Sequence record: NC_005260.1
Strand: one strand, 5' to 3'
DNA: 64,000 bases
The translations under genes were made by a program, and so were the position numbers. Positions 40,020-56,957 of this stretch are shown here, in pieces. Under the pieces are notes generated by a model, which saw only the letters and a program-made list of their open reading frames with translations, was not told where the DNA came from and did not search any database. Within the stretch, counting starts at the first letter, position 1. Each line of letters opens with the position of its first letter.

Positions 40020-40050
40020 TATTTAGTATAGCTTAAAACCTAGCTAAATA
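40020..40050. promoter_or_regulatory. Divergent pair of CTAAATA late promoters
   Basis: CTAAATA on minus strand 40020-40026 (toward rnh) and on plus strand 40044-40050 (toward 34). Confidence 0.7.
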
Positions 40051-40075: not shown

Positions 40076-43000
40076 ATGGCTTTACAACCACTTCGCGCAA
40101 CAGCAGGTTTGGATGCTGCTGGTAAACGCGCTATAAACTTCGGCTACCCGGACAAGTCATTCGGTGGAGACGGCGTTAACGTTGATTTTTTCATCTACGA
40201 AAACACTATTCAACCTCACAGTCCGAGCAGAACATATCCAAAAGACTTCGCGGTAGTATACAATGACCGTATCTACATCAGTCAAGTAGAAATTACCGCA
40301 CCGGAAGCATTCAATCTCAACAAATGGAAAGCAACTCGCGTTGACCCATCATGGAGAGTTGTTACTTCCACCGCGAATTTGCAAGGCAACATTCGTCAGG
40401 GTGAATACATCCTATCGCAAGTTGTTGGTGCAAACTCAGTATACACTATGCCATTCGATGCTGCAAACGCTATTCCTACCGCTGGTGATACCGTAGTTAT
40501 CAAAGACAACGGATTCGCTACACACGATTATGAAATCGTTGTTAACGGTAACGGTAAAAACATTAACGGATCAGCAACACATCGAATCACACTAGCTGGC
40601 TCAACTACCGTGTTTATCTACAACGGTACCGAGTGGGTAGCACAGCTTTGGGCACAGGGAGATTCTAACAGAACTTATATCAGTTCGTCAAGCTATGTTC
40701 CCGGTGAAAACTACTTCCGTTCTAAAGTTGGTGATCATCTTGTTCGCGAAACTCAGTACGGTGGTGGTATTCGTGTTCGTTTGCCACGCTATGCAAATCA
40801 CGGCGACACTATCGTTACCTATGACTTGGACGGCATGAACCCAGTTACAAAGACTGAGTTTTTCATTTACCCAAACAGCGGACACAAAATTCTTACCGAA
40901 GTTGGTGCTGCTGCCGTTGACACTGCCAAGTTTGACAGTACCGGTTGGGGTTACTTGATTTTCGATTCTCGCGTAAATCAGTGGCGCGTATTTGACGCGG
41001 ACGCTAAAATTCGCTGGAACATGATTCAAGCCAACTATACAGCGACTCTTGGAGAAAAACTAGCTGTTCACGCGGCAAACAATACCGACGTGATTACAGT
41101 AACGTTTCCTCAAGAAGCGTCGAATGGTGATAGCTTTATCATCGATACCAGTTACATGGTACAGGGATCTAAGATCACTCTAAAAATTCCAGACGCACAG
41201 GCTAACGACTTCATTGTACCAGATGAAAATGCATTGTCAACTCCTTACGTGTCGAAATATCGTGATATCGTTAAAGATCTAACGAAGTTCACTACCAAAA
41301 CCGAGACGTTCACAATTGACGGACGTTCGCATCAGTGGGAGTTTACTTACTTCCGTAATGCGCTTGGTACCGGTTTAGACGTATGGATACTTGTTACAAA
41401 CATTCCGGTTCCATTCAGAGTTGATCGCAATGATACATCATTTGTTGGCCTAGCTGCAATCTCTACTCAAGCGGAAGTCAACAAAAACAAAGAGCAGATC
41501 ACAACTGGACAAAATCGCGATTGTGAAACTTTCGTTACACCAGAAACTCTGGCAAACAAATTAGCAACGCAGACTAACCGTGGTATTGCTCGACTTGCAA
41601 CCGATGCAGAATCGAAAGCAACGACAGGAACTACCGAAGCTTGGAACAGTGTAATCATGACTCCAGAGCGTGTCAACAACAGATTGGCAACTGAGACAAT
41701 GCGTGGTGTTATGACTGTTGCGACACAAGCACAAGCAAACGCAATGACCGGAACCGGTGAAATGTGGGCGCAGACTGCAATCACTCCTAAAGTGCTTGAC
41801 GGACGCAAGTCAACAGAAACGCAAACCGGTATCACTTATCAAGTGATTCAAGCTGGTGCCAAACAAGCCGAACGTGCAACTAAAGGCGTTGGTGTTCACG
41901 ACTTTGACGAACATTACCGTTATGTTACACCAAAAGTTTTGTTTGAAAAAGTAGCAACCGATACATCACAAGGTATGGGATTTACCGCAACTCAAGCAGA
42001 AGCTAACGCAGGCACAGATAATCATGTAAATGGCCCATTGCTTGTTACTGCGAAAATTTTGCACGGACGCCAAGCTACTACAGCTTTAACTGGTTTGTCA
42101 AGAGCTGTTACCGATGCTGAAATGAGTTCAAACACTCCTCCAACTGGCGATAACGTTCATGTTACTCCGGATGCGATCATTAAGCGCACAGCTAACGAAA
42201 CTCGTTGGGGTCTGGCAGAAACCGCAACTCAAGCAGAAGTCGATGCTGGTGTTTTGCATGATCGTTACTTTGTTACACCACTTACCAACAAAGTATGGTT
42301 AGATGCTACACGACTAACAGTTGAAGCGTCAAGTGGTTTAACTACTGTTGGTACAATTTGGCAGGGTCAGAAGTTTGATATCGTTTTATCAACTGAAACT
42401 CAACGTGGTACGTTGCGTGTTGCTACTCAAGCAGAAAGCAATACTATGCTCACTCCGATTGACGACGCTGTTATTACGCCAAAGAAACTCAACGACAGAC
42501 GCGCCAGTGAGACTTTGACCGGTATTATCGAACTCGCAACTAAGGCAGAAAGTGATACTGGTACCGACGCAACGAGATCAGTTACACCATTACGTGTTCT
42601 GGATTCAATTCGTACAAGTGCAAACCACAGAATGAGTGAATCCCGTTATGGGGTTGGTATGATGTGTGTGTTGGCAAATGACGCAAGTGTGAATACTGTT
42701 TGGCAAGGTGATGATATTCAGGGATCAACTCGTCCTGTTACTAATTACGCGAATGATAATATCGTTGTTAGTCCACGCGCATTGAATACCGCGCTGACTC
42801 ATTATCTTCCAATTCTTGGTGTTGCTGAAAGCTCACGTTCTATGGACACAACTGACGGAACAAGAGTTAAAGCCGATGATTGGGTACGTCGCACAGTAGC
42901 GCAAACTATTACTGGTGCAATGAAGTTCACTCAGAATACATTGTTCGAAAAATCGGCACCCGTTGTTATTCTGAATGATATTACTGCCGGAAGTCATACA

Positions 43001-43786
43001 ACTAAGATTCAATTCAAGACAAACGCAAACACAAACTGGTGGGAAACCGGAGTTTATGTTATCGACGGCGGATTTGTTATTAACTCTTATGTTGGAAATA
43101 CAGGAACTCCTAGACTGGTAATTGCTAGAGACGGTGCAACTACTTTCTCTAATAGCGTATCAAACGGCGGACAGGATCCAACAGCCGCAAATCATTTGAC
43201 TCGCTGGGATTACACTGAAAATCGATACATGAGAAAGACCGGAAATATCGCAGAAACTATCACAGGTTTCAAGACTTTCCAAAACAATACAACATTTAGC
43301 GCAGGTGCTGGTAACGCATTCAGTATTAAGATTGGTCCGGATTCTGAGAAATCTGGAATTTATGCACATCCAGATGGAACACTGGCGATTGGTTCAAACG
43401 GTATTTTGAGATTGCGTCCAAGATCAATGACCGATGCTACAAACCAAACATCCATCGAAAGCACAGGTGTTATGACTGTTGCTAGTCAAGTTAAAACGTT
43501 GGCAACTGCTCCTGTTGCTGCCAATGATCTAACTCGCAAAGATTACGTCGATGGATTAATCGATGATGTAACCAAGAGTGCCGACAGTCGCGTAAATAAG
43601 AAAGGTGACAACATGACTGGCGAATTGATTATTACGTCTCCGCAAGCTATTACAGCAAACGGTGCCGTGACAATCAAGGAACTGCTGACAGTTAAAACTT
43701 TGAGAATTGAAGTCGGTAACGGCGAGTTCTTGGAAATTAGACCTAACGCAGTTACCAGATCAGTTGATTTTGTATGGATTAGTTAA
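40076..43786 (+). CDS. 34: gp34 long tail fibre proximal subunit
   Basis: 1236 aa; repeated ATQAEVN/GxxxxAT..E..TP..L units; T4 synteny next to rnh. Confidence 0.92.
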   Translation: MALQPLRATAGLDAAGKRAINFGYPDKSFGGDGVNVDFFIYENTIQPHSPSRTYPKDFAVVYNDRIYISQVEITAPEAFNLNKWKATRVDPSWRVVTSTANLQGNIRQGEYILSQVVGANSVYTMPFDAANAIPTAGDTVVIKDNGFATHDYEIVVNGNGKNINGSATHRITLAGSTTVFIYNGTEWVAQLWAQGDSNRTYISSSSYVPGENYFRSKVGDHLVRETQYGGGIRVRLPRYANHGDTIVTYDLDGMNPVTKTEFFIYPNSGHKILTEVGAAAVDTAKFDSTGWGYLIFDSRVNQWRVFDADAKIRWNMIQANYTATLGEKLAVHAANNTDVITVTFPQEASNGDSFIIDTSYMVQGSKITLKIPDAQANDFIVPDENALSTPYVSKYRDIVKDLTKFTTKTETFTIDGRSHQWEFTYFRNALGTGLDVWILVTNIPVPFRVDRNDTSFVGLAAISTQAEVNKNKEQITTGQNRDCETFVTPETLANKLATQTNRGIARLATDAESKATTGTTEAWNSVIMTPERVNNRLATETMRGVMTVATQAQANAMTGTGEMWAQTAITPKVLDGRKSTETQTGITYQVIQAGAKQAERATKGVGVHDFDEHYRYVTPKVLFEKVATDTSQGMGFTATQAEANAGTDNHVNGPLLVTAKILHGRQATTALTGLSRAVTDAEMSSNTPPTGDNVHVTPDAIIKRTANETRWGLAETATQAEVDAGVLHDRYFVTPLTNKVWLDATRLTVEASSGLTTVGTIWQGQKFDIVLSTETQRGTLRVATQAESNTMLTPIDDAVITPKKLNDRRASETLTGIIELATKAESDTGTDATRSVTPLRVLDSIRTSANHRMSESRYGVGMMCVLANDASVNTVWQGDDIQGSTRPVTNYANDNIVVSPRALNTALTHYLPILGVAESSRSMDTTDGTRVKADDWVRRTVAQTITGAMKFTQNTLFEKSAPVVILNDITAGSHTTKIQFKTNANTNWWETGVYVIDGGFVINSYVGNTGTPRLVIARDGATTFSNSVSNGGQDPTAANHLTRWDYTENRYMRKTGNIAETITGFKTFQNNTTFSAGAGNAFSIKIGPDSEKSGIYAHPDGTLAIGSNGILRLRPRSMTDATNQTSIESTGVMTVASQVKTLATAPVAANDLTRKDYVDGLIDDVTKSADSRVNKKGDNMTGELIITSPQAITANGAVTIKELLTVKTLRIEVGNGEFLEIRPNAVTRSVDFVWIS

Positions 43787-43796
43787 CGGAGGCCAA

Positions 43797-46700
43797 ATGG
43801 CTGAATTAGTTATTGCCCGTGTTACTGAACAGGGTATACAAGCGCGTGATCTGTCAGAAACATTTTCTGGCGATAACGAGTTGATCATCAAGGGTCAACA
43901 AGGCAACGCAGGGGGAACTTGCGTTGCCACCCTAAATGGAGTCAGTCTTAGCCCTTCTCAAACGAAGGGCTTAAACTGCATTCATTTAACAGAAGATTTT
44001 AAGCCAACATTGATGTCGTTTGATTTCAGTGTTGTAACAGATACCGATAGATTCACAACTTGGGTAAACAGTTTGGCTACTGGTATTATTCTTTTAATGA
44101 GTCACACGGAAAACGTGACTAACGACAAGCTTAACACTTATTTCGATCAAATCGGAAGCGTTGGTTGGAAATATTACTGGAATCCAGATAAAGGAACTAA
44201 TCGTAGTTCTTATGTCGCTATTATTGATTGTCCTCTGAAAAAGATCATGACTGAACAGTTTATGGGACATGGTAAAACTACAATGCAAGCCCAGTTGTGT
44301 ATTGTGTTTGATACATTCGCTGACATTGGTGTTACTGGATATGGCGACATGATTGCTTGGGAAGAGAGTGAATATTTTACCAAAACGCCAGGATATGCGG
44401 TAAAAGAACTAATTAAACTGTCAAACTTGAAAGATCTTAATATACATCCAGGTGAAACAATCGAATTGACTGGAGAACTTTGGGCATCAGAGCAGGCATC
44501 CGTCGATAAGGTAAAATCATCGATATTCCTACAATATTATACCGACAATGCTTGGATTAGTAGTCATTCTATTAATTCAAGTGGAATCGAAACCTGGACA
44601 AAAGGAACTGTTACATCCGTTGTGCCTGCGAATTGCAATCGTATATTCATTAGATTATATCGATATCCAAATGTGCCATTGAGTACAGCAGAAATTGGTA
44701 TTCGTGATGTTATGGTGAAATTGAGAAAGCCCGATGTTAAGAAAGATAGAACAAACGGAACATTCGGACAATGGGGTTTTATTACTGCCAATGCCAATGC
44801 CGCTGATTCTTCTGCTAACTGGGTAGCGAGTTCCAAAGGACAGGATTTGATTACTCATTCGTATGAGGAATTAGATCAAGAGTGGTTGCCTCAGTTTAAC
44901 CAAGACGGTTGGTTTGATATTCCGGATTGGATGCCAGGATCTCGTTATGAAATTAGTCAAACAATTTCGTATGATTATCCACTCGATACGAGCGGAGATG
45001 GCAATGCGTGGATGCGTTCTGGTATGGGCGGTGTAACGGACGGATTAGAAGATCGCAGCATTAAAGTGGGTATTCGAACAGTCAAACATGCTAGAGGCGA
45101 AGGACATTTTATGTCTTATGGCGGCGCTTATGTTGATTTCGATGCAAGAATTGAATATGGCAGATCGTATACTTACAAAATTGCGGTAGACGGTGCTAAT
45201 GTCAAATTCTATTTGGACGGAGTAGAACAGACTCCAACTGGAACAGCAGTCGCATTTAGACAAATAACTCATTTCTCGGTTGGTGCAGAGAAACGCGGAA
45301 ACGTACATATGCATCCAATTCGTGGCTCAGTTCATGAATTAAGTATGGTCGACAAAACAAGAACAACCGGAACAAATGATCGTTTTTATAACTTTGTTCG
45401 TCCAGGACAATTAGACGACAACAGAACAGTACCCGGAAAATCTCGTTATTCTGGAGTCGAATACTTCGGTGATAATCTAACTCCAGATAATAGCGGTGCG
45501 TTGTTCTATTGTGGTGCTGGCTCTAAGCTTGTGCCAGGCGGTCTAAGCGACGAAAGTGAGGCTGTCTATGTCACTGTATTAGACGCGGGTGGAAATGAAC
45601 TCCAGAGCGGTGTGGAGCTTAATAAGCGATATCTATGTGATGTCGTTCAACTCGGTACTCCTAGAGCTGATTGGGTATCTTCTCCGAGTCAATATCATAT
45701 TCGAAATCCTAGCAAGGGGTCGCAGTGGATTGTGGAGACAGAAGGAAAGAACGTCAATACGATGAAAGTCAAAATCGAATGTGTTACTTCTCCTAAGATC
45801 AACGGCACTGTTACTAATGTTGATTGGGTGGATATCAATAAGCAGATTGCTAGATTCAACGGCACAAATCAATGCGCTGATATTCCTACATGGAAAGGTC
45901 CCGGTGAGTTTCAAGTCAAGTTCAATTTTGAAAGAAAAACTCCATTGACGTCCAGTTATATTCTAGAAGGAAGAACAACAACGGATGTTGATACCAAGTT
46001 TGGCGGTATGTATATCAACACAACAGATCAAGTTATTCCTTATGGTGGTTTAGTTATCGCTAGTATTAACGGAATGCCGTTTGTTGCTGGTAGCAAAGTT
46101 ATTCCTGGTGTTGATTACATCGTGTGTGGATATATCAAAGAAGGCAGTCAGATTAGCAGAATCGGTAGTAGATATAACGATGTTGAGTATCTACAGGGAT
46201 ATGTGTGGGATCTATCATTCGACGGAACCGGCGATGATCGATATTACAAGAATTATAATGTGAGTCGATATGATGCTTTCAATAACTACATCAAAGACGA
46301 ACTTGGAAAAACTCAATCGCTTTATTCCAAGGCATACGTTAGAGATTTCACCTTGTTTAGTACCGCGATCAAACAGAATGAGAAGTCATACAAATTCAAC
46401 GCGGCAACAACACCAAGCGGTGCATCTATCGCAATAGATGTTCCTAAAGGTGCGATGATTCGAGTTGACTTTGATATTGATACCGAGACTCCCAGTGAAC
46501 TAAGATGCTCAAAACACACAAGCGGTTCTGCTCCGTTGATTAAATCGTTGCCTGCTGGTCGCAATAAAGGATCAGTGTGTTACGTTGTGACTGACCCAGA
46601 TCCGGGGATTTACATTAGATCTATCGCTCCTAAGTTGAATGAACTCGTTAAGATTCATAAATTGAACGTTAGTCGTGTTTATACCGACGCAATCATTACT

Positions 46701-47735
46701 AACGCCAACGGTTCTAGTTATAAGCTAGAAGAACGTGAACAGCCGGTAATGAAAACAATCAACCGAACTAGATGGATTCCTGATTATAGAGTTGGACACA
46801 TGCATATTCAAAATGCGTGGAAACCAGATCCAAAAGATTGGGCGATTCGTATCAAGTTTAAAGTTGGTGCGTTGAAGGACGTTATGAATCCACTTATTAG
46901 TGGCTTGAAGAATGATACCAGCACAATCAATATAGATCAATACAACTCGGTAGAAAGTGTTCGTGTGTTTAGCTATGACGCAGCAAGAAAAATTAACACC
47001 GGCGTGACGTTGAATGCTGGATTCAAAGTCGGAGATATCGCTGATGTGTATGTTAATGTTCTTGGTAACAAAGTGACTATTTCGGCGAATGGAAAATCAA
47101 TAACAGGAGATTGGATTCCAGACGGCACAGAAAGCGTTAGTTTCATCGGTGCAAGAGAAGGCGCTGGATTGAGATACAACAACGATATATATCTTGTTGA
47201 GTTGATTGACAGTAGCACTAAACTTTGCAATAGCAGACGTTACGATTTGTCATATTATTCAACAGTTAAACCAACTCATACCGTAATAGAAAATGAGCTT
47301 GGTGCTATTAAATATATGAGAATTGGAGAAATAGATGCGACTAATACAATATACGGTTGGGACGGAACTAAAGGAGAAGAGTCTCAAATTGGACGTATGA
47401 AAGACTCATGGTTTATCGACGGGCATCAAATGGATCTTTTTACTACTATAAATACAAGTGGGTATAGTGCTTATTTGCATTTTGTTGGCAATAAGAGACC
47501 ATTTAATTCTGTTGATGTTGAGTTATATCAAATCGACAATAATAATAACGAGCAGTTGTTTGGAGTATACAACGCGAATCAGGCGATCAACTCGGAAGGA
47601 TATGGAATTCCGGAAAATGCTGACGTCAAAACTTGGTTTAGTGATTTGAACACTACCAAGAAAGTTATTTTCAGACCCAAAGGCGTCGGTGCATTGCTTG
47701 CATTTGTCGATGCGAAATCTTGGGTCGCTATCTAA
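43797..47735 (+). CDS. 35: gp35-like hinge connector, greatly extended (1312 aa)
   Basis: Start re-called at ATG 43797 (GGAGG RBS); N-terminal region like T4-type gp35; follows 34. Confidence 0.7.
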   Translation: MAELVIARVTEQGIQARDLSETFSGDNELIIKGQQGNAGGTCVATLNGVSLSPSQTKGLNCIHLTEDFKPTLMSFDFSVVTDTDRFTTWVNSLATGIILLMSHTENVTNDKLNTYFDQIGSVGWKYYWNPDKGTNRSSYVAIIDCPLKKIMTEQFMGHGKTTMQAQLCIVFDTFADIGVTGYGDMIAWEESEYFTKTPGYAVKELIKLSNLKDLNIHPGETIELTGELWASEQASVDKVKSSIFLQYYTDNAWISSHSINSSGIETWTKGTVTSVVPANCNRIFIRLYRYPNVPLSTAEIGIRDVMVKLRKPDVKKDRTNGTFGQWGFITANANAADSSANWVASSKGQDLITHSYEELDQEWLPQFNQDGWFDIPDWMPGSRYEISQTISYDYPLDTSGDGNAWMRSGMGGVTDGLEDRSIKVGIRTVKHARGEGHFMSYGGAYVDFDARIEYGRSYTYKIAVDGANVKFYLDGVEQTPTGTAVAFRQITHFSVGAEKRGNVHMHPIRGSVHELSMVDKTRTTGTNDRFYNFVRPGQLDDNRTVPGKSRYSGVEYFGDNLTPDNSGALFYCGAGSKLVPGGLSDESEAVYVTVLDAGGNELQSGVELNKRYLCDVVQLGTPRADWVSSPSQYHIRNPSKGSQWIVETEGKNVNTMKVKIECVTSPKINGTVTNVDWVDINKQIARFNGTNQCADIPTWKGPGEFQVKFNFERKTPLTSSYILEGRTTTDVDTKFGGMYINTTDQVIPYGGLVIASINGMPFVAGSKVIPGVDYIVCGYIKEGSQISRIGSRYNDVEYLQGYVWDLSFDGTGDDRYYKNYNVSRYDAFNNYIKDELGKTQSLYSKAYVRDFTLFSTAIKQNEKSYKFNAATTPSGASIAIDVPKGAMIRVDFDIDTETPSELRCSKHTSGSAPLIKSLPAGRNKGSVCYVVTDPDPGIYIRSIAPKLNELVKIHKLNVSRVYTDAIITNANGSSYKLEEREQPVMKTINRTRWIPDYRVGHMHIQNAWKPDPKDWAIRIKFKVGALKDVMNPLISGLKNDTSTINIDQYNSVESVRVFSYDAARKINTGVTLNAGFKVGDIADVYVNVLGNKVTISANGKSITGDWIPDGTESVSFIGAREGAGLRYNNDIYLVELIDSSTKLCNSRRYDLSYYSTVKPTHTVIENELGAIKYMRIGEIDATNTIYGWDGTKGEESQIGRMKDSWFIDGHQMDLFTTINTSGYSAYLHFVGNKRPFNSVDVELYQIDNNNNEQLFGVYNANQAINSEGYGIPENADVKTWFSDLNTTKKVIFRPKGVGALLAFVDAKSWVAI

Positions 47736-47775: not shown

Positions 47776-47802
47776 GCCCTGACTTCGGTCAGGGCTTTTT
47801 TT
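47776..47802 (+). terminator. Terminator
   Basis: GCCCTGAC-TTCG-GTCAGGGCTTTTTTT. Confidence 0.92.
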
Positions 47803-47813
47803 ATTCCAAATCG

Positions 47814-47820
47814 CTAAATA
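47814..47820 (+). promoter_or_regulatory. Late promoter CTAAATA
   Basis: Between terminator and fibre 1 RBS. Confidence 0.8.
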
Positions 47821-47845: not shown

Positions 47846-50800
47846 ATGGCAGATCTTAAATTAGGGTCTCAGATTGGAGGAAATCTAATCTGGCACCAAG
47901 GAATTCTGGAATTAAATCCTGTTGACGATAAGCTGTTTTATCGTGATCAAGAAATAATGACTACCAGAGGATATCAGACTATGCTTGGTTCAATCAAGTT
48001 TGGTACTTCTAATGATGTCTATGACATCGAAAGTATGAGCGACGGCCCGGGTGGGGTTAAGCGTTATTTGCGTAAAATGCGCTCCGGTGCAGCTTCTACT
48101 ATTTGGCATGAAACTATTAATGATCGTCTATATACGATTTCAACGGGTATAACCGATGTTGCTCCTCAGTTTACGCTGAATAACGGAGACAGTGCGACGT
48201 TTCAATATCCGGTTTTAACTAACAGCCCACAATCCGGTTTAGCAAACTCATTTACCCGTAGAGATTATGTGGTAGCAGAAGATGCGAAGAAAGTTAATAA
48301 AGCTGGAGACGGAATGACCGGTAACTTGGATTTTCATAATGATAATCAAGGCATCAGAGTTAAATTTCCGGGTGGATCAGTAGCGAATAATACCGGAGTT
48401 TTCGGTGGAACAGGTGACGCCGCAGCAAAGGACAAAACCAATATTCAAATCAAATCTTGGTATGGTGTTGGATTTAGTCCAAGTGTAACAACTGCAACAA
48501 GTAAAGTCGTTGCAGATGGAGAGAACAGTATTTGGTTTGATCTCAGAAACGGTAAAATGACAACGGTAGGACGTTTATTCGTTGATACCGATAAAGAGGT
48601 ATATAGTCCAGTCAATAAGCCAACTCCCGGTGATATAGACGCTTATACAAAGAAAGAAGTTGACGAAAAAAGCTGGATTAGAGTCAAAGATGAACGAGCC
48701 GCAATGATTGCGCCGAATGCATTGGCAAATAAAACTGTTGCCGCATATTTCACTAATCAGAGCGATGTTTCGTCTGGCTGGGTATCTGGATTGACTGTAA
48801 ACGGTTGGGATACAAACTACGCCGCATGGTCATTGTTTGCTGGATCAAGATCTGATGCCGACGAAAATAAACTATGGTTTAAGCACGGACGTTCTACTTG
48901 GCTGCCTAGCTCACGCATTTATCACGAACAAGATAAGCCAACAAATGATGAACTAAACTTGGTATCGCGCGCCGGTGATATTATGACTGGTATTCTTGAT
49001 ATGAAAGTGCCTGATAGTATGGGTCATGGCAAATATAGTATCAAACTGAATAACGGCTCAATTGGTGGCATTAATCAGCTAGTGTTTAATGACCCGTCTG
49101 ATACTTTCTCGGAAGGTATTCTTTTCCCGAAAACAGGAAAGAACGATCAGGGAACGACAAGCGCGGATTATGATACTCTGTGGGCACTCGACGGCGTTTT
49201 GAAATTCAATGGTCAAGCAGCTTATGGCGAATGGAATAAGCCAAACGCAGATGACACGCAATCATTCCCGGATGTTAGAACAAAACTAGCAGTTGATTTG
49301 GATACAGTTTTAACAATTGGTGCTTATTTCCAAGATGCAAACACAAACGCGACTGTAGCATTCCATTATCCAATGCAATCAGCCGGATCTCTATTTGTAA
49401 CTCGTTCGGCTTATGGTGTTCAACAAGAGTATACAACTTTCGGCGGACGTAAATTCCAACGCGGTAGAACGAGCACGGGTGTATGGGGACCATGGACTGA
49501 GTTTTATTCTGACGCTGCACCAACTCGTTATTTGAAGACGACAGGTGATACCGTTACTGGCACGCTGAAATCAACAGCGAATATCGTAATCGAAAGTTCT
49601 TATGACGGAATGTTGACATTGAATTCTACCGATGACGGTCCGAATTATATTACATTCGCTCGCAGCGGTGATAATAGATTCTTCATTCGTCAGGCAACAA
49701 CGGGCGATATCGCAACAGATAGACTTGAATTTTTGAGTGGTGTTAAAAATACAGAAGGAGCTTATCTGACTCCACTATGGGTCGATAGCACTGGTGTTTA
49801 TTCCAATCTACCACAAAAGGATGCAAGTAACGCATTAACTCGTAAAGACTATGTAGATACCAAAGTTGGTACTGCGGTACAGAGCGTTACCGCGACCGGT
49901 GCTGTTAAGAGCACTGGCGGAATTAACCCAGTAATCAGTTTGATCAACGCGACAACTACTGCCGACGGTGCCATGAGCGCAGCCGATAAAGCTAAGTTGA
50001 ATGGACTACCTGCTGCCGCAGTCAACAAGACTGGCGATAGTATGACTGGTAATCTGACATTCACCAATAACAGCGAGTTGGTATGGAATAGAAATAGTGA
50101 TTGGGCTAAGATTGGTTTCAAGAACGATTCGGATTCCGATGTGGATGCTTATATGTGGTTTGAAGCAGGAGACAACGGAAACGAATATTTCAAATTCAGA
50201 AGTCGAATGACCGGCACAACAACACCGGTTGAACTTGTTAATATCAAGAAAGAAAACACAACTTTCATGCATGACGTTGTATTGAAGGCGAGAGAATCTA
50301 ACGAATTAACATTGACCAATGATCCAACTGCTTATACCAATAATACAGGAACAACTCGTATGATTGGTGGTGTTTATTCTCAATGGTATACCGATGCGCT
50401 GACGTTTGGACATTTCAGAGGACCATCCACTACTTCTGCTGGATTTAAAGTTAAACTGAATGACAAGGATATATTAGCAGTTGCACCTGATAGAACACTC
50501 ACAACCGGAGCCGTGATTGGTGATAGTTATGTTGCTGTCTCTAAAGCAGGTAAACTTCTAGCATTGGAAGTTGATACCACGACTAAGATTCCTTATATTA
50601 GCGTCGATGCAACTTATCAGGCGATTCGATTTGAGGATGATAAGTCAATCACTTTGCCAGCGGGTCCTCTGAGTGTTTCTGGTAATATCAGAGCAACTGG
50701 GTCCGGAGATGTTTTTGCCAAAGAGAGTGTGAACGTTACCGGTCAGATTGTTTATTTTGCCGACAAAGCTACTGGTAAGACTGCTGGTGAAACTGGTATT

Positions 50801-51922
50801 ACTACCGCGCGTTTTATTGAAATGCTAAATGAAAAAGGTGCGTTTAAGACTGTTTATTGGTGCGGCAAAGCCACATGGGATTATGCCGGAAATAACGTGA
50901 TCACAGATCTAGGACAAGGATTTGGTAATTTGCACTTGGCAGGTTGCGTTATTGAAGTAATCGGAACAAGCAGTCAATATATTATTCGAGTTACAACTCC
51001 AACAACTCACGGAACTGCATTGGGCGCAAGCGTTAATCGCGAATATATCTATTCTAATCATGGACCAACTTATGCCCCTGGTTGGAGACGTAGTATTAAT
51101 AGCCTCGATGTAAACTTGCAGCAATCTGGCTCATGGGCGACAACAATCAATAAAATTCCATATATCGGTGGAAACGGAGTAATGGAAATTGCAAAATATA
51201 TTGATTTCCATGATACGGATAGCACAGCGGATTATACCGTTAGACTAGAAAATCAAGGCGATAGTCTCTGGGTTAGAACACAACATGGTGGATTGCAGCT
51301 TGGTGCACAGAATACAAGTTACGCTCATATATACACAGATCGTCCTGTGTTCTACATGAACAAAGAGCTACAAATCAACGGAGCTCGCGTTATGTTCGAG
51401 GGTTCAACACACGGAACGTTGACTTTATCAAACTGGATTAGAACTACTGGTGACACGGGATTGTTTTGTGCATCACATGGTGGCGGTATTCATATGTCCG
51501 ATGCTACATGGGTTAGAGTTTACAACGGCAAAAAGTTCTTCGTTTCTAATGCGGATGGCGACGCGATATATACTGCCGGTGGAATGAAGGCAGAAGGAAA
51601 CGGTAGTTTTAACGACGTTCAAATTCGTTCGGATGAAAGATTGAAATCCAATTTCAAACCTATTCTGAATGCTCTGGACAAAGTTGATACTCTTTCTGGA
51701 TTGACATATGACAAAGTTGGTAAAACAACTCGCGAAGCTGGTATTATTGCGCAGAAACTAAAAGCGGTGTTGCCAGAAGCAACCGGCACAGTCTTGAATG
51801 CAATGGACCCGACTGCAATTGAGTATCTGACTGTTTCTAACTCTGGCGTCAACGCGCTATTGGTAGAAGCAATCAAAGAGCTTAGAGCAGAATTGAACGA
51901 ACTTAAATCTAAACTTAACTAA
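47846..51922 (+). CDS. Distal long tail fibre 1 (gp36-like N-terminus fused to gp37-like body) with C-terminal S74 intramolecular chaperone
   Basis: MADLKLGSQIGGNLIWHQG resembles T4 gp36 MADLKVGSTTGGSVIWHQG; SDERLK...GIIAQ...LLVEAIKEL S74 signature. Confidence 0.88.
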   Translation: MADLKLGSQIGGNLIWHQGILELNPVDDKLFYRDQEIMTTRGYQTMLGSIKFGTSNDVYDIESMSDGPGGVKRYLRKMRSGAASTIWHETINDRLYTISTGITDVAPQFTLNNGDSATFQYPVLTNSPQSGLANSFTRRDYVVAEDAKKVNKAGDGMTGNLDFHNDNQGIRVKFPGGSVANNTGVFGGTGDAAAKDKTNIQIKSWYGVGFSPSVTTATSKVVADGENSIWFDLRNGKMTTVGRLFVDTDKEVYSPVNKPTPGDIDAYTKKEVDEKSWIRVKDERAAMIAPNALANKTVAAYFTNQSDVSSGWVSGLTVNGWDTNYAAWSLFAGSRSDADENKLWFKHGRSTWLPSSRIYHEQDKPTNDELNLVSRAGDIMTGILDMKVPDSMGHGKYSIKLNNGSIGGINQLVFNDPSDTFSEGILFPKTGKNDQGTTSADYDTLWALDGVLKFNGQAAYGEWNKPNADDTQSFPDVRTKLAVDLDTVLTIGAYFQDANTNATVAFHYPMQSAGSLFVTRSAYGVQQEYTTFGGRKFQRGRTSTGVWGPWTEFYSDAAPTRYLKTTGDTVTGTLKSTANIVIESSYDGMLTLNSTDDGPNYITFARSGDNRFFIRQATTGDIATDRLEFLSGVKNTEGAYLTPLWVDSTGVYSNLPQKDASNALTRKDYVDTKVGTAVQSVTATGAVKSTGGINPVISLINATTTADGAMSAADKAKLNGLPAAAVNKTGDSMTGNLTFTNNSELVWNRNSDWAKIGFKNDSDSDVDAYMWFEAGDNGNEYFKFRSRMTGTTTPVELVNIKKENTTFMHDVVLKARESNELTLTNDPTAYTNNTGTTRMIGGVYSQWYTDALTFGHFRGPSTTSAGFKVKLNDKDILAVAPDRTLTTGAVIGDSYVAVSKAGKLLALEVDTTTKIPYISVDATYQAIRFEDDKSITLPAGPLSVSGNIRATGSGDVFAKESVNVTGQIVYFADKATGKTAGETGITTARFIEMLNEKGAFKTVYWCGKATWDYAGNNVITDLGQGFGNLHLAGCVIEVIGTSSQYIIRVTTPTTHGTALGASVNREYIYSNHGPTYAPGWRRSINSLDVNLQQSGSWATTINKIPYIGGNGVMEIAKYIDFHDTDSTADYTVRLENQGDSLWVRTQHGGLQLGAQNTSYAHIYTDRPVFYMNKELQINGARVMFEGSTHGTLTLSNWIRTTGDTGLFCASHGGGIHMSDATWVRVYNGKKFFVSNADGDAIYTAGGMKAEGNGSFNDVQIRSDERLKSNFKPILNALDKVDTLSGLTYDKVGKTTREAGIIAQKLKAVLPEATGTVLNAMDPTAIEYLTVSNSGVNALLVEAIKELRAELNELKSKLN

Positions 51923-51956
51923 GGAGGACGGGGAGAAAATCCCCGTTATTATTATG
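51920..51956 (+). promoter_or_regulatory. RBS separated from ATG by a hairpin
   Basis: TAAGGAGG + ACGGGGA-GAAAA-TCCCCGT + 7 nt + ATG. Confidence 0.75.
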
Positions 51957-52394
51957 GTAGCATTACCTTTCTGGCTTTCAACTGCAAACGCAGAATTGCG
52001 AGCTAACGGTTGGGCTAGTAACATGAGAACACAAGCTGGATTACCGGTTGCTGGTTTCATGAGTCAGTTGGTAAATAAAACAGCGATTAGTCTGATTGCC
52101 GCACCAAGTCGAACTAGCTCTATGCCTGTTTATTTCTCCTACTCAGGAGGAAAAGTTATTATGGAAGTTCCAACGTATAACTTGAAACAAGAAATCATAC
52201 TTGGTATGCCTTACGTTAATATTACAATGTCTGGACCAATACAAGCGCAGGGTTATAATGGCGGATGGCAGCGAATGGATGCGGGCATGATAAAAATGGT
52301 AAAAACATTTCAAGCAACAACTGAGTTTGTTATTACGTTTTCGAGTTCGCCGGACGGAACAACATCTAGACATCAATTTACATTTAAAAACTAA
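51954..52394 (+). CDS. 38: gp38-like fibre-tip adhesin
   Basis: LPFWLSTA...GWAS......AGLPVAGFMSQL resembles the N-terminal attachment domain of T2/T6-type gp38; follows an S74-bearing fibre. Confidence 0.65.
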   Translation: MVALPFWLSTANAELRANGWASNMRTQAGLPVAGFMSQLVNKTAISLIAAPSRTSSMPVYFSYSGGKVIMEVPTYNLKQEIILGMPYVNITMSGPIQAQGYNGGWQRMDAGMIKMVKTFQATTEFVITFSSSPDGTTSRHQFTFKN

Positions 52395-52415
52395 GCCACC
52401 TTCGGGTGGCTTTTT
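52393..52415 (+). terminator. Terminator
   Basis: AAGCCACC-TTCG-GGTGGCTTTTT. Confidence 0.9.
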
Positions 52416-52423
52416 CATTTTCA

Positions 52424-52430
52424 CTAAATA
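52424..52430 (+). promoter_or_regulatory. Late promoter CTAAATA
   Basis: Between terminator and fibre 2 RBS. Confidence 0.8.
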
Positions 52431-52456
52431 ACGATATAAACTGAGAGGAGTCTATA

Positions 52457-55400
52457 ATGGCAGATCTTAAATTAGGATCACAAATCGGAGGTAATCTGAT
52501 TTGGCACCAAGGCATTCTTGAGCTAAACCCTCTTGATGATAGCCTGTTTTATAAAGAATTCGATATGATCACCTCTAAAGGGGGTCAAACTATTAATGGC
52601 GGTATTTCTCTAAAAGGAGATATCAACTCAACTGGTAAATTTATCGGAGTTGGTAATGATGTTGGCTGGGGACAAGCTCCACACGCCGCATTTAACATGG
52701 ACAAAGATAATACATCCGGTGCTCACTGGCTTATTGCAAGCCGCAAATCAGACGGTAGTCCACGTGCTGGTATTCAAGTGCTGACAAGTGATATCGGCGA
52801 AACTCGTATTTACACAAACAAGAATGCGAACTATGTTGGATTCCGTGACGGCCAAGTGTATATCACAGCAACAACTCCTTCCGTTGCATCACATGCTGCT
52901 CGCAAAGACTACGTGGACAAAGAAGTTGATAGAGCTATGCAGTTCGCTGAAACAACTACTGACAAACTTACCACAGACTTGGCAACAGCAAACACAAAGA
53001 TCGACACATTAGACGCGCAGAATGTTAAGTTGACTGGAGATCAAACAATTAGCGGAATCAAGCGATTCAACGCTCATATTTTTGTTCCGACTGCTGATCC
53101 AACTTTAGATACACAGCTCACACATAAGGCATACGTCGATAAGAAAGTCGGTACCGCTGTTCAGGGAATCGCTGTGACTGCACCATTGACTACCACCGGC
53201 GGTGTTAACCCAACGCTGGCAATCACGGCTGCCACACGTACTGCCGCAGGTAGTATGAGTGCTGCGGATAAAGTTAAGCTAGACGATCTTCCTGCCGACG
53301 CACTGAGTCGTTCTGGTGGCAATATGAAGAACGGTGGATATATCAACTTAGAAGGTGTTGGTGGTATTCAGTCTCTTTATAACGGGAAAACTTATTCCGT
53401 TTTGAGAGATCATAATAACGGCAACGTTACATTAAGTGCCGCTAGTGGTGATTTGTATCTTGGATATCAAACTACCGCCGAAGTATATACAACCAAGAAC
53501 GTTATTCTTCATCAAACTATGAAATGGAATTCAGGAACTGGACGTGTTCTTGTTGATACCGATGGATTTATTCCGTGGGCAAGTATTAAAGATAAAGTCG
53601 GATTAGAAGGTAAGACTAAGCAAATTACGGGTCCTATCAATTTTGATGAATATGAGAGTACCGGTTTTTATAACTTGTATACAGCAAGAGCAACTGGATC
53701 AGTTAATCCACCACCATTCGATTACGGAACAATGCTTGTTCTTGGATCGGATAGAGATACTAGAACTTTTGTAACTCAAATCGCAACTGATAGAACTCAA
53801 GGATCGACTTATATCCGTACTAGAAATGATGGTGCGTTTGCTTGGACTCCGTGGGTAAAACAGATTGACGAACGTGGCGGTACTCTGAAAGATTTGACAG
53901 TTACCGAACAAGTCCAAATGAAAAAAGGATATGATGCTGATCTGAGTGGTATTATTCACAAATCATTTGAACACATTGGTAACACCGGTGATATGAAACC
54001 CATTTTGATTCTGTTGGCAAAACGTAGTTCTACTACAGCAATCGAAAGAAATGGCTTTATGGGACGGATTCATTTCAACCGTGGCGCAACGACATCGAAT
54101 CTTCAAGGCGATTATATCGATCTGGTAGCTTATTCTGGATATACCGAACAGTTCTATCGAATCAATTATATCAGTGGCGCAAAGATGGCTGGCACTAAGC
54201 TAGTTTATCATACACACACAGACGGAATTGAATATATCGCGTTGTATCGTTCGGCTAATAGTGCGTCCAACGTTGTAATCGATGGATTGTATTGGAACAC
54301 CGCACCGATTCTTATTGCTGATGCTACTGGTAGAGCAATGACTGATTTGGTAACTCGTCAATCATTCTATACCGATTATAATAAGCCGACTAACGAAGAT
54401 TTGGATTTAGTATCTCGCGCTGGCGATGAAATGACTGGAACATTAAGATCTGCCAAAATCAAAAATGCCATCATGGTAAACGATAAAGGAAGTATTAGTT
54501 TCCAAGATGGAGCAAGCACTAGATTCCATTTGGCATCCGAAGGCAATTCGCTTACGCTGAAACATGGAAACGACGGACAAAATGCGCTCGTTACATATTT
54601 GGGAGATGGCTCAATTACTTCTGTTGGACCGGTTACCGCGTCTGCATTCAGATCTAGTGGTGATTATGGGTTTGTTCGTTCAACTAATAACACCCAAGGT
54701 ATGTTCGTTGGAGCTGACGGTAGAACTATTATCGGCGGCGGTGTTAATGGCGTCGTTCATATTCGTCCGCAGGGAATTGGCACAACAACAGTTGAAACCA
54801 CGATCAACAACGACGGTACTATTACTCTAGGTAAACAAGGAACTGCTGCTGGACATTTAATTAATAAGGCTTATGTTGACGCAGTTGATGCCAAGAACGT
54901 AGCGAAAGCCGGTGATACTATGACTGGTGATTTGATTAACACAAAAAGCGTTCGCGCTCCCGTTGTATTGTCTGCCGTTGGAGATAGAAAGTTAGCACTG
55001 GAAATAAGTTCGGCAGCTGATAATCTTCCTTATATAAGTGTTGATTTTGCATATCGCGCTCTTGAGTTCAACGATAATAAATCAGTCACTGCGGTTCACG
55101 GATTTGAGGTGAACGGAAGAAACTCAACATCAAACTTTATTGTTCGTTCTACTGGATTTGTTGGTGGTTGGGCTCGTGGATTAGCTGGGCTTTCCGGGGT
55201 GGATACGATATCAACACAGAAAGCTGGAATTGGTTTCTCTGGTACAGGAGACTCAATCGCTCAAGTTTATATGGGTATGGGTTCTGCTCCTTGGGAAGCA
55301 GATAAAGGCATTCAAATTAACGCAAGTAACCAAATGTCATTTAAAAATGGACAAGACGGTGCTGCTATATTTGATGCGGGAGCGAGTGCTATGTTTAGAA

Positions 55401-56368
55401 ACGGAACAACTAACGCTTGGTATCATATAAACAATAACGTGGCGAATGACGGTGTTATGATTTCACAGGGCGCAACCGCTGGTGTTGATCCGATTTCTAG
55501 ATTCTCTGCGGCTGATATTAAGTTACATAAAAGAACTTATGTTCTTGGTAATGGTCAATTCCAGATCAACACAAGCGGTAATCCTGTTCTTGAGTTTCAT
55601 GTTCCAGGAAAACACGCTCGACTTGTTTGGCTAGATAGTACAACAGGAGATTTGAATTTCGGTCAATCTAACGGTGCATTTGGAGAAGCAAAGCGTTACA
55701 TGCAGATGCGAGCAGAAGGAACCGGACTTACTATGTATGGAAACAACTGGTCGGCAGCTGGATCACATGCATACGCAGATCAATGGGCAAGAGAAGCTCC
55801 TATTCAAGTTGATTTCGGTACTGTGAATGGTTCCTCGGATTATTATCAAATAGTCAAAGGTCGTTCCATTGCGTCTGGATTTGGATTTACAACGGACGTA
55901 GAATTCGGTACGCTTCGTTCAGGAGGTGGTACATGGGGAACGGCAGTTATTAGAGTTGGATCCGGTGAATCTGCAACACGAACATCACAGGCAGTATTTC
56001 AATTTGGAATAACAGGAAACTTTGTTGCTCCTGGTGGTGTATATGGTGGTGGTGTATATGATTCTGGCAACAGATGTTATTCAGCTAGTAACCCTCCCCC
56101 TGTTGCAGATGGAACCGAGGTTGGAACAGCAATGGCAAATATGAGTGTGTCCGCAATTGGTGCAATCGGATTTATGGTACTTAATACTCAAGTTGGAAAT
56201 AAATCCGCTGGATACGAAGTTGCTGGATCTGCATTAAGATGGTGTTCTGCTGAGGGAAACAATATCTCAAGCAACGCACCTCCTGGCACATGGAGACTAC
56301 TAGGATATATTGACGGTTCCGGTGGTTACACCAGATGGAATACATCTTTGTGGCAGAGAGTCAGATAA
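52457..56368 (+). CDS. Distal long tail fibre 2 (gp36-like N-terminus fused to fibre body, no S74)
   Basis: First 25 aa identical to fibre 1; ends PPGTWRLLGY...SLWQRVR, a common fibre C-terminus. Confidence 0.88.
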   Translation: MADLKLGSQIGGNLIWHQGILELNPLDDSLFYKEFDMITSKGGQTINGGISLKGDINSTGKFIGVGNDVGWGQAPHAAFNMDKDNTSGAHWLIASRKSDGSPRAGIQVLTSDIGETRIYTNKNANYVGFRDGQVYITATTPSVASHAARKDYVDKEVDRAMQFAETTTDKLTTDLATANTKIDTLDAQNVKLTGDQTISGIKRFNAHIFVPTADPTLDTQLTHKAYVDKKVGTAVQGIAVTAPLTTTGGVNPTLAITAATRTAAGSMSAADKVKLDDLPADALSRSGGNMKNGGYINLEGVGGIQSLYNGKTYSVLRDHNNGNVTLSAASGDLYLGYQTTAEVYTTKNVILHQTMKWNSGTGRVLVDTDGFIPWASIKDKVGLEGKTKQITGPINFDEYESTGFYNLYTARATGSVNPPPFDYGTMLVLGSDRDTRTFVTQIATDRTQGSTYIRTRNDGAFAWTPWVKQIDERGGTLKDLTVTEQVQMKKGYDADLSGIIHKSFEHIGNTGDMKPILILLAKRSSTTAIERNGFMGRIHFNRGATTSNLQGDYIDLVAYSGYTEQFYRINYISGAKMAGTKLVYHTHTDGIEYIALYRSANSASNVVIDGLYWNTAPILIADATGRAMTDLVTRQSFYTDYNKPTNEDLDLVSRAGDEMTGTLRSAKIKNAIMVNDKGSISFQDGASTRFHLASEGNSLTLKHGNDGQNALVTYLGDGSITSVGPVTASAFRSSGDYGFVRSTNNTQGMFVGADGRTIIGGGVNGVVHIRPQGIGTTTVETTINNDGTITLGKQGTAAGHLINKAYVDAVDAKNVAKAGDTMTGDLINTKSVRAPVVLSAVGDRKLALEISSAADNLPYISVDFAYRALEFNDNKSVTAVHGFEVNGRNSTSNFIVRSTGFVGGWARGLAGLSGVDTISTQKAGIGFSGTGDSIAQVYMGMGSAPWEADKGIQINASNQMSFKNGQDGAAIFDAGASAMFRNGTTNAWYHINNNVANDGVMISQGATAGVDPISRFSAADIKLHKRTYVLGNGQFQINTSGNPVLEFHVPGKHARLVWLDSTTGDLNFGQSNGAFGEAKRYMQMRAEGTGLTMYGNNWSAAGSHAYADQWAREAPIQVDFGTVNGSSDYYQIVKGRSIASGFGFTTDVEFGTLRSGGGTWGTAVIRVGSGESATRTSQAVFQFGITGNFVAPGGVYGGGVYDSGNRCYSASNPPPVADGTEVGTAMANMSVSAIGAIGFMVLNTQVGNKSAGYEVAGSALRWCSAEGNNISSNAPPGTWRLLGYIDGSGGYTRWNTSLWQRVR

Positions 56369-56371
56369 GAA

Positions 56372-56404
56372 CTAAATAACTCAAAGGGGGCTTCGGCCCC
56401 TTTT
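56372..56404 (+). promoter_or_regulatory. Late promoter CTAAATA followed by a UUCG hairpin
   Basis: CTAAATA 56372-78; AAAGGGGGC-TTCG-GCCCCTTTT 56383-56404. Confidence 0.65.
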
Positions 56405-56423: not shown

Positions 56424-56957
56424 ATGAACACTCTAGTATTATTGAGAATGCTACAACATATTATTCTTTTACCTCTTCATTTATTCATGTGCCTAACGTG
56501 CTGGATCTTATCACCAGTGCTTCCGTTGTTTGCGATAAATAAAGAGACACTGCCTAACTGGCTGAGCTGGTATCAAACTCCAGACGCTCCATTAGATGGT
56601 GATAGTGGCCACGTGGAACGTTGCGCTGGATATCCGCGTTATATTCAACGTGTGCTATGGCTTATTAGAAACCCTGCATATGGATTTGCTTGGTCAGTTC
56701 TTGCATATCAGCCAAAGAGTTCTGAATTTAAGTGGAAAGGGTCGCTAGGATATACAAAAGGCGATGAAGCTAAATTCGGCTGGTATTTTATTACCCAAGA
56801 GACTGGACATTTTCAATATAGCGTTAGATATCCTAGCGTATTTGGGAAACAGTTCAGACTGCGGTTTGGGTGGAAAATGATTGGCATTGCAACTGCTGGA
56901 ACTTGGCATGAAAGGAAGAAGTTTGTATTTACATTAAATCCACTTGACGGAGGCTGA
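56424..56957 (+). CDS. Hypothetical protein with hydrophobic N-terminus, coupled to endolysin
   Basis: 177 aa; QTPDAPLDGD...WLIRNPAYGF motif; AAGGAG RBS. Confidence 0.75.
   Translation: MNTLVLLRMLQHIILLPLHLFMCLTCWILSPVLPLFAINKETLPNWLSWYQTPDAPLDGDSGHVERCAGYPRYIQRVLWLIRNPAYGFAWSVLAYQPKSSEFKWKGSLGYTKGDEAKFGWYFITQETGHFQYSVRYPSVFGKQFRLRFGWKMIGIATAGTWHERKKFVFTLNPLDGG

Follow-up and report, generated by a model that had tools for sequence, protein, structure and literature searches.

Two complete distal tail-fibre genes of Aeromonas phage Aeh1 probably encode alternative half-fibres for one gp35 hinge

How does a T4-like phage use two distal tail fibres where T4 has one? The fibre locus of Aeromonas phage Aeh1, a T4 relative, sits between rnh and asiA in the NC_005260 annotation and raises this question. 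We analysed a 64,000-nt stretch of NC_005260.1 (the window); its fibre features are collected in the table. The locus resembles that of the T4 long tail fibre in its rnh-asiA neighbourhood, its gp34 and gp35 homologues, a gp36-type N-terminus and late transcription. It differs from T4 in that gp36 and gp37 are fused, two such proteins (F1 and F2) are encoded rather than one, gp35 is about 3.5 times larger and the promoter reads CTAAATA instead of TATAAATA. Trojet et al. 2011 (PMC3157838) reported that g37 is tandemly duplicated in Aeh1 and RB43, and suggested that the two products occur as a mixture or that a single version is used. The core finding is therefore already known, and the value of the present analysis lies in sharper evidence and scope. 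We consider it probable that the two Aeh1 genes specify complete, alternative distal half-fibres, which act in parallel and share one gp35 hinge.

Table. Features of the Aeh1 tail-fibre locus, in nucleotide positions of the window
Feature	Position	Strand	Support or remark
gp34, proximal half-fibre, 1236 aa	40076..43786	+	phrog_972, E 0; NC_005260 annotation
gp35 hinge connector, 1312 aa	43797..47735	+	phrog_1154 at residues 5-327
Intrinsic terminator closing the gp34-gp35 unit	47776..47795	+	8-pair stem, then T run; conserved in relatives
Late promoter CTAAATA for F1	47814..47820	+	published Aeh1 consensus
F1 (Aeh1p335), fused gp36/gp37-type distal fibre, 1358 aa	47846..51922	+	
F1 predicted docking N-terminus, residues 1-25	47846-47920	+	
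GGAGG and GC hairpin between F1 stop and ORF336 ATG	51923..51947	+	conserved in 9 phages
ORF336, 146 aa	51954..52394	+	Gp38_N-like N-terminal domain and ~100 aa beta-sandwich
Intrinsic terminator closing the F1-ORF336 unit	52393..52412	+	conserved in relatives
Late promoter CTAAATA for F2	52424..52430	+	at -28 to -33 in 9/9 Aeh1-like loci examined
F2 (Aeh1p337), second fused gp36/gp37-type distal fibre, 1303 aa	52457..56368	+	
F2 predicted docking N-terminus	52457-52531	+	
CTAAATA, then hairpin, past F2	56372..56403	+	closes the F2 unit and opens the next

F1 and F2 do not differ in residues 1-25, and over the first 52 residues they match at 36 (BLASTP E 5e-20). The profile phrog_1425, 'hinge connector ... 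distal connector', covers fibre residues 1-41 (E 3e-18), and a tblastn search with residues 1-60 matched gp36 genes in 1331 Straboviridae records; only about 20 of the 1331 carry a gp36-type N-terminus twice. Past residue ~52 the two rods have different sequences, and their modules follow a different order. The block with SAADK.KL (F1 664-733, F2 221-290; 54% identity, E 5e-15) places this motif mid-protein in F1 (711) and near the N-terminus in F2 (268), and LVSRAGD.MTG (372 in F1, 651 in F2), KL(L)ALE...PYISVD (903, 845) and W.PW (547, 463) complete the four motifs whose positions confirm a different order. The preliminary description, which had proposed a common T4 gp36-like head followed by reshuffled shared modules, was thus right on both counts. 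A separate short gp36 joining a separate gp37 was not found: at 1358 and 1303 aa, F1 and F2 each have their own distal end, and they are fusions of the same kind as in phage 65. The ~1300 residues of each correspond to roughly T4 gp36 and gp37 combined.

The 25 identical residues might also permit heterotrimers that mix F1 and F2 chains. Since the rods differ and only F1 has an S74 folding domain, in-register mixed trimers would be unlikely, and we regard heterotrimers as extremely improbable.

A terminator, a CTAAATA motif and a ribosome-binding site had been noted upstream of each fibre gene, and all of them were located. CTAAATA is the late-promoter consensus of Aeh1 (PMC1524935). It lies 26-27 nt upstream of the ATG of both F1 and F2, and is found also before gp34 (40044-40050) and ORF338 (56372); relatives have C/A/TATAAATA at the F1 promoter position. 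In the window as a whole the motif is not above chance (7 observed, 7.75 expected), and 4 of the 7 copies stand directly upstream of late genes. The terminator hairpin 3' of F2 occupies 56383-56403. The late promoters of F1 and F2 are similar, and both genes have a strong ribosome-binding site at equal spacing; these signals are conserved across the clade.

Comparison of the two N-termini at the codon level bears on their age. In codons 1-25, all 12 differences between the F1 and F2 genes of Aeh1 are synonymous and 0 change the amino acid, and in seven further Aeh1-like phages 6-16 differences are synonymous and 0-2 change the amino acid; in codons 26-52 the residue is changed at 16 of 27 positions. 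Recent gene conversion as the source of the identical N-termini was rejected, as synonymous sites have diverged. The dN/dS ratio is 0.10-0.17 for F1 and 0.13-0.17 for F2, at dS of about 1-2, values that speak against a decaying duplicate. These substitution patterns indicate that neither copy is recent and that purifying selection acts on both. Between relatives, F1 residues 850-1250 are variable or swapped and the N-terminal part is conserved; likewise, the F2 tip (residues 1216-1303) is swapped and the N-terminus invariant. Such a conserved N-terminal part joined to a swapped distal part suggests a receptor-binding protein in each case.

Use of one version at a time, chosen at expression or assembly, with the other kept as a reserve copy or as a recombination donor of tip modules, is the second option of Trojet et al. 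(PMC3157838). It would suit the modules common to F1 and F2 and the segments that both have traded with prophage fibres. However, a silent donor cassette is not expected to retain a promoter, a ribosome-binding site and selection, and here both genes keep these signals at the same spacing throughout the clade and show purifying selection over long divergence, docking peptide included. We judge the use of a single version to be quite unlikely.

The two fibres end differently. F1 contains an S74 chaperone domain at residues 1262-1312 (51629-51781; PF13884, Pfam E 6e-12, above the cut-off). Its matches to PDB sequences are Mu S (5yvq), Mu S/S' (8ju3) and S16 gp37 (6f45_A), and residues 1202-1357 align to the last of these, the gp38-binding tip. 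The preliminary description had F1 end in an S74 autochaperone followed by a gp38-like adhesin. Pfam confirmed the domain, its cleavage being putative; the adhesin claim held for the N-terminal domain of ORF336 and failed for the glycine-rich gp38 body. An alignment of the ORF336 family with 20 gp38 sequences gave an hhalign probability of 95.3% (E 2.4e-8) over columns 1-55, Gp38_N (PF21721) matched 3 of 15 family members in Pfam (best E 0.002), and P0019 matched the gp38 of Cronobacter phage S13 (BLASTP E 2e-5). The link of ORF336 to Gp38_N is remote, because ORF336 itself has no direct Pfam match. None of the 15 members matched the gp38 body PF05268. A structure model of ORF336 forms a beta-sandwich (pLDDT 77) for which Foldseek returned nothing below E 0.03 in the PDB and no match to 6f45. 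A search against PDB sequences gave one insignificant match (E 0.82), and the family profile did not reach 6f45.

ORF336 starts 31 nt past the F1 stop, an arrangement that is the same in 9 phages and recurs in contigs L015 and L018. There, its relatives lie directly downstream of fibre genes with an S74 (L018) or S74-type (L015) end. These features make ORF336 a candidate for the adhesin or cap at the F1 tip. The resemblance to gp37 and gp38 of T2, T6 and S16 (PDB 6f45) thus extends to an F1 C-terminus that aligns to S16 gp37 and has an S74-type domain, and to the small protein encoded next to it, whose N-terminus is Gp38_N-like. In contrast to those gp38 proteins (~260 aa), ORF336 has 146 aa and, instead of the PF05268 body, a beta-sandwich with no significant fold match in the PDB. 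From its sequence, the GGAGG and hairpin in front of ORF336 read as a split ribosome-binding site and possibly also as a weak terminator; L018 has a hairpin of another sequence at this position. A hairpin between Shine-Dalgarno sequence and AUG, as in ORF336, has a precedent in T4 gene 38 (PMC3014915).

F2 lacks S74 and has neither a Pfam match nor a match to PDB sequences at E ≤ 0.01; it ends in WRLLGY...WQRVR with no gp38-like adhesin behind it, as had been stated earlier. Its residues 1000-1215 are shared with 'pyocin knob' fibre proteins encoded on Aeromonas chromosomes. An AlphaFold monomer model of residues 1000-1303 was unusable (mean pLDDT 54). A separate search of NCBIfam gave zero matches. 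No Tfa/gpU-type, Caudo_TAP-like gene follows F2 in Aeh1, where the next gene, ORF338, is a DUF7338 protein; PX29 has a weak Caudo_TAP gene 3' of its F2 (E 0.0018). ORF338, which has a hydrophobic N-terminus and its own promoter, was rejected as a partner of F2: 602 records from unrelated phage groups contain DUF7338, one copy each. F2 is thus without a dedicated partner gene. Trojet et al. 2011 (PMC3157838) described each g37 copy as followed by a small ORF, treated both small ORFs alike and listed Aeh1 as having no identifiable adhesin. By our analysis the two ORFs are distinct, ORF336 carrying a Gp38_N-like domain and ORF338 being a widespread DUF7338 protein not tied to fibres. The 2011 verdict probably reflects a divergent adhesin that keeps only the attachment domain of gp38.

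These ends bear on whether F1 and F2 could assemble in series, with F1 as gp36 and F2 as gp37 of one long distal fibre, an arrangement that the preliminary description had named as its refutation. The gene order 34-35-F1-F2 does resemble the 34-35-36-37 of T4, and in L018 the gene for a gp36-type protein precedes a second, separate fibre gene whose product has another N-terminus. In Aeh1, however, the N-terminus of F2 is itself gp36-type and not distinct, and either protein is by itself as long as a complete distal half-fibre. Serial assembly is further disfavoured because F1 ends in S74, a domain that is cleaved off in other fibres, followed by a Gp38_N-type cap, and because the region before S74 is swapped among relatives, whereas the F2 N-terminus is invariant. 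According to Trojet et al. (PMC3157838), the length of the fibre agrees with one gp37 trimer, which also counts in favour of parallel half-fibres. Assembly in series is accordingly very improbable.

A branched fibre carrying both F1 and F2 would likewise agree with the common N-terminus, as would attachment of one copy elsewhere, in either case with no competition for gp35. Branched multi-fibre adaptors exist in the phages G7C, CBA120 and phi92, and the gp35 of Aeh1 is very large, with an extension of ~980 aa behind its ~330 gp35-like N-terminal residues. We considered this giant gp35 as a hub with two docking sites and rejected it, as a search of the extension for an internal repeat of the gp35-like domain found none. 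Comparison with Pfam gave just Laminin_G_3 below threshold (E 0.015) for the gp35 segments, and no PDB sequence matched at E ≤ 0.01. The extension is also present in the phage 65/CC2 group, whose members have a single fibre, and missing from S13 and L026, which have two fibres and gp35 proteins of only 501 and 595 aa. The extension therefore appears to be independent of the fibre duplication. The gp35 gene itself is single-copy per genome (tblastn, 819 places in 819 records), Aeh1 included. A branched fibre or a second attachment site is, in our estimate, unlikely.

Parallel half-fibres on one hinge, the reading we prefer, would work as follows. By analogy with T4, trimers of F1 or of F2 would dock onto gp35 and thereby onto the gp34 proximal half-fibre. 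We infer docking to gp35 from the common gp36-type N-terminus, the single gp35 and the co-variation of the paired N-termini, and such docking would imply parallel rather than end-to-end assembly. F1 would follow the T2/S16 plan, its S74 domain presumably cut off once folded and its tip capped by ORF336, which would attach through the Gp38_N-like domain and display the small beta-sandwich; F2 would bear its own tip. Both would be transcribed late, each from its own CTAAATA promoter, so one cell is expected to contain both pools, from which the six fibres of each virion would be taken. The literature searched contained no virion proteomics, expression or imaging for the Aeh1 clade. The earlier proposal of two fibres competing for gp35 stands as far as genomic evidence carries it: the copies appear complete, selected and separately transcribed, with the same docking end and one gp35, and serial assembly is disfavoured. 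Mixed virions and dual-receptor use, which it also proposed, we infer from this arrangement.

Other phages display alternative receptor-binding proteins by different means. K1-5/SP6 carry two receptor-binding fibres on one particle. The same is described for Shigella phage Sf14 (PMC11821841). Aeh1 is like them in encoding two receptor-binding proteins side by side, presumably present together. It is unlike them in that their fibres use separate attachment sites or adaptor faces, which puts both on every particle, whereas Aeh1 apparently has one type of site, so that fibre copy numbers per particle would vary. As in the S/S' switch of Mu and P1 and in DGR systems, alternative receptor-binding ends are offered on one fibre base, and F1 has modules like Mu S and S'. 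In contrast to Mu and P1, both Aeh1 fibre genes are complete with their own promoters. Long inverted repeats and an invertase were sought, and an inversion switch was rejected in agreement with the earlier proposal: the only inverted pairs are four weak ones, 20-24 nt long with 77-82% match, and there is no recombinase or invertase among the ORFs at 38-58 kb.

Comparison of fibre complements among relatives, which the preliminary description had called for, showed the F1/F2 pair in 10/10 Aeh1-like phages (three genera plus Ahp1_CNU). Similar tandem pairs with a terminator and late promoter occur in Cronobacter phage S13 and in two uncultured T4-like contigs, the UViG contig L026 and the Logan contig L018, and every genome with a fibre pair carries one gp35 hinge gene. 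In phage 65 one fused fibre of 1286 aa suffices. Tentatively, and with somewhat less than even confidence, we propose that half-fibres competing for one gp35 are a recurrent T4-like design that gives a random receptor mix per particle, as bet-hedging without DNA switching, and that the Aeh1 group combines it with a previously unrecognised class of short, Gp38_N-anchored adhesins. The recurrence, the assignment of ORF336 as a Gp38_N-type adhesin and the hairpin-split ribosome site appear to be additions to published work. If both fibres do use one type of hinge, T4-like phages could carry two receptor specificities, with copy number per particle set by expression and assembly rather than by genetic switching, which matters for the evolution of host range across a very large family of phages. 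The divergent ORF336 also helps to annotate comparable small ORFs behind fibre genes with an S74 end.

Nearly all Aeh1-like phages have F1 and F2 intact. The sole exception is F2 of Ah1, annotated as two CDSs with one frame break; this may mean that not every isolate keeps both copies intact, or may be a sequencing error. The paired N-termini co-vary: those of one genome are 78-90% identical, those of different lineages 40-60%.

At 100% identity, the stretch 47846-56368 corresponds to record positions 217080-225602 of Aeromonas phage Aeh1 (NC_005260 / AY266303), a T4-like phage (Straboviridae, Cinqassovirus), and carries two fused gp36/gp37-type fibres, F1 (Aeh1p335, 1358 aa) and F2 (Aeh1p337, 1303 aa). 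A tandem g37 duplication with a small ORF after each copy was described in Aeh1 and RB43, and either a mixture or a single expressed version was considered (Trojet et al. 2011, PMC3157838); the core duplication finding is therefore already known. Our analysis appears to add evidence of selection on the common docking peptide, the single hinge gene, a Gp38_N-type candidate adhesin with a split start site (ORF336), the uncoupling of ORF338 from the fibres, and the recurrence of dual fibres in other lineages.

Features of the fibre region, with residue positions of the motifs common to F1 and F2
Feature	Position	Strand	Remark
gp34	40076-43786	+	
gp35	43797-47735	+	1312 aa
Terminator hairpin	47776-47795		
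F1 (Aeh1p335)	47846-51922	+	
ORF336	51954-52394	+	
Terminator hairpin	52393-52412		
F2 (Aeh1p337)	52457-56368	+	
Terminator hairpin	56383-56403		
ORF338	56424-56957	+	177 aa
Lysozyme e			3' of ORF338
asiA		other strand	after lysozyme e
Motif SAADK.KL	F1 711; F2 268		
Motif LVSRAGD.MTG	F1 372; F2 651		
Motif KL(L)ALE...PYISVD	F1 903; F2 845		
Motif W.PW	F1 547; F2 463		

The Aeh1 late-promoter consensus CTAAATA, derived by Nolan et al. 2006 (PMC1524935), lies 26-27 nt 5' of the ATG of gp34, F1 and F2. It is not over-represented across the whole window (7 observed, 7.75 expected); the evidence is its placement, not its count. Together with the terminators, this placement divides the genes into three late units (gp34-gp35, F1-ORF336 and F2). 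Both fibre genes are preceded by this terminator-promoter-RBS arrangement in 9/9 Aeh1-like loci examined, in agreement with the preliminary description, which gave each fibre its own set of signals. Two divergent CTAAATA copies, 24 nt apart, also occur at 40020-40050, between rnh (-) and gp34 (+).

F1 and F2 are identical over residues 1-25 and at 36/52 of the first 52 positions (E 5e-20). The PHROG family matched by residues 1-41 is that of gp36 ('hinge connector of long tail fiber distal connector'), and tblastn with residues 1-60 reached the annotated gp36 gene in 1331 Straboviridae records; of these records, only some 20 have this N-terminus at two places. The common, gp36-like head proposed from the sequence was thus borne out, as was the reshuffling of modules behind it: F1 664-733 corresponds to F2 221-290 (54% identity), F1 358-405 to F2 637-686 (46%) and, more loosely, F1 820-940 to F2 780-882 (29%), and the motif positions show the swapped order. 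The two ends are also as described, with a Peptidase_S74 domain at F1 1262-1312 and the C-terminus WRLLGY...WQRVR in F2, which has no match in Pfam or in a PDB sequence search. Over its last 156 residues, F1 aligns to the piece of S16 gp37 in the crystal structure with gp38 (6f45_A). Mu S- and S/S'-like modules within F1 (724-808 and 981-1089; 5yvq, 8ju3), and the recurrence of F2 1000-1215 in chromosomally encoded Aeromonas proteins (annotated 'pyocin knob domain-containing S74 family peptidase'), point to an exchange of modules with host-genus prophages or tailocins. Note that F2 748-842 and the C-terminal part of gp34 (1094-1196) have a common block (32% identity, E 2.5e-7). Pfam Phage_T4_gp36 matches F1 154-249 above the curated cut-off and, weakly and below it, gp34 near the F2-like block.

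The N-terminus occurs at two places in Aeh1, Ah1, avDM12, phiAS5, phiWae14, PX29, AsFcp_1, AsFcp_2, AsFcp_4 and Ahp1_CNU, and in the Cronobacter phages S13 and LPCS28. The suggested comparison of fibre complements thus finds the pair in Aeh1-like phages of three genera and Ahp1_CNU. Phage 65 has one fused fibre (1286 aa) with lysozyme e directly 3'; a gp36/37 fusion is therefore the rule in this branch of the family, and what stands out is the second copy. In codons 1-25 of Aeh1 F1 and F2, 12 codons differ, 12/12 synonymously; in codons 26-52 the residue is changed at 16/27. Seven other Aeh1-like phages have 6-16 synonymous and 0-2 changing differences in the first 25 codons, and the S13 pair 12 and 3. 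Such a pattern indicates purifying selection on the N-terminal peptide in both copies; the synonymous divergence speaks against recent gene conversion. In the conserved parts of orthologues, dN/dS is 0.10-0.17 for F1 and 0.13-0.17 for F2, at dS about 1-2. Both copies are old and appear to be functional. The Ah1 record splits F2 into two CDSs (one break), and its gp35 is matched in two pieces, as is the unannotated gp35 of PX29 (L004, 6921-11001). The annotated starts of PX29 F2 (L004 ~15698; complete N-terminus in frame) and of several GenBank ORF336 orthologues (loci L002, L005, L006, L007 and L008 of relatives) look too far downstream, because a conserved upstream ATG lies in frame.

The fibres could dock in parallel, as alternatives on the gp35 hinge, or in series, one acting as gp36 and the other as gp37. 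There is a single gp35 gene per genome (819 places in 819 records). Among F1 orthologues, residues 1-~810 and the S74 end are conserved and ~850-1250 swapped; among F2 orthologues, conservation covers at least the first ~500 residues. The Aeh1 F2 tip (1216-1303) is unlike that of phiAS5 and resembles those of phage 65 (37%) and PX29 F2; Ahp1_CNU F2 ends in S74 instead. This is the usual receptor-binding pattern in each fibre. F1, whose end is presumably removed and capped and whose sequence before S74 varies, would make a poor docking site for the F2 N-terminus, which does not vary. Each fibre alone has about the length of T4 gp36 + gp37. The fibre size fits one gp37 trimer (Trojet et al. 2011, PMC3157838). 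Identity between the N-termini (40 aa) is 78-90% within a genome versus 40-60% between lineages, as would be expected if both must fit their own lineage's gp35. Given one gp35, tip swapping, the presumably capped F1 end, protein length and the alike N-termini, we moderately favour parallel docking. Mixed virions would be its simplest consequence and are a prediction from it; no proteomic or imaging data for the Aeh1 clade were found in the literature. Aeh1 gp35 is gp35-like over the first ~330 aa only, followed by a ~980 aa extension common to the phage 65/CC2 group (25-27% identity), whose only Pfam trace is a sub-threshold Laminin_G_3 (E 0.015). This extension would lie at the fibre knee.

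The family of ORF336 (146 aa) is rare: when 1.84 billion proteins were searched exhaustively with a profile, 16 representatives reached E <= 0.001. Pfam Gp38_N matches 3/15 members, the Cronobacter S13 gp38 N-terminus aligns to one (E 2e-5), and profile-profile comparison with 20 gp38 sequences aligned the first 55 columns at 95.3% probability (E 2.4e-8). The glycine-rich gp38 body has no match in the family. Relatives lie directly 3' of a fibre gene with a Pfam S74 domain in L018, an uncultured Logan contig, and with an S74-type C-terminus by sequence likeness in L015, another uncultured contig. Of the 'gp38-like adhesin' proposed after F1, the Gp38_N-like attachment domain and the position are therefore supported, but not the gp38 body. 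In the model (pLDDT 77) the N-terminal ~44 residues are poorly defined and the rest is a confident beta-sandwich without significant match among PDB folds. ORF336 is nearly identical in Aeh1 and phiAS5, and only 45% identical between Aeh1 and avDM12, whereas F1 of the latter pair shares 72% over its whole length; ORF336 has thus been exchanged independently, as expected of an adhesin. The gap from the F1 stop to the ORF336 ATG (51923-51956) holds GGAGG, then a GC hairpin and TTATTATT; 26 nt separate the SD from the ATG, shortened to about 9 nt when the hairpin is folded. Nine phages and L015 (~4270-4310) keep this arrangement, and L018 (~9960-10003) has a hairpin of other sequence there. The arrangement recalls T4 gene 38, whose split ribosome site is a published case of a hairpin closing the SD-AUG gap (PMC3014915). 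The ORF336 hairpin might also be a weak terminator setting the fibre-to-adhesin ratio.

ORF338, a DUF7338 protein just 5' of lysozyme e, was considered as an F2 partner and rejected. It has a hydrophobic N-terminus and its own CTAAATA (at 56372, 46 nt 5' of the ATG), then a hairpin. A single homologue is present in each of 602 records, which cover FelixO1-like, T4-like, jumbo and other phages, and this single occurrence in very different groups unties ORF338 from F2. Rather than serving the fibres, ORF338 may be a membrane protein or take part in lysis. F2 is without a dedicated partner gene.

Cronobacter S13 has two distal fibres of one N-terminus type, both with S74-like ends, and a true gp38 3' of the second. 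When GGNLIWHQG was searched as a DNA pattern, six IMG/VR contigs matched, 5/6 with two copies, along with a 182.8-kb metagenome contig with two copies. The UViG contig L026 has the order gp35 (595 aa), fibre A, terminator, CTAAATA, fibre B, with 90% identical fibre N-termini. In L018 (1-11564; T4-like), two proteins have a gp36-type start: a gp36-type protein with a LamG-like end is followed by a separate S74 fibre, a fused gp36-type S74 fibre, the ORF336-family protein, M15 endolysin, holin T and asiA. This contig seems to encode a two-piece distal fibre alongside a fused one.
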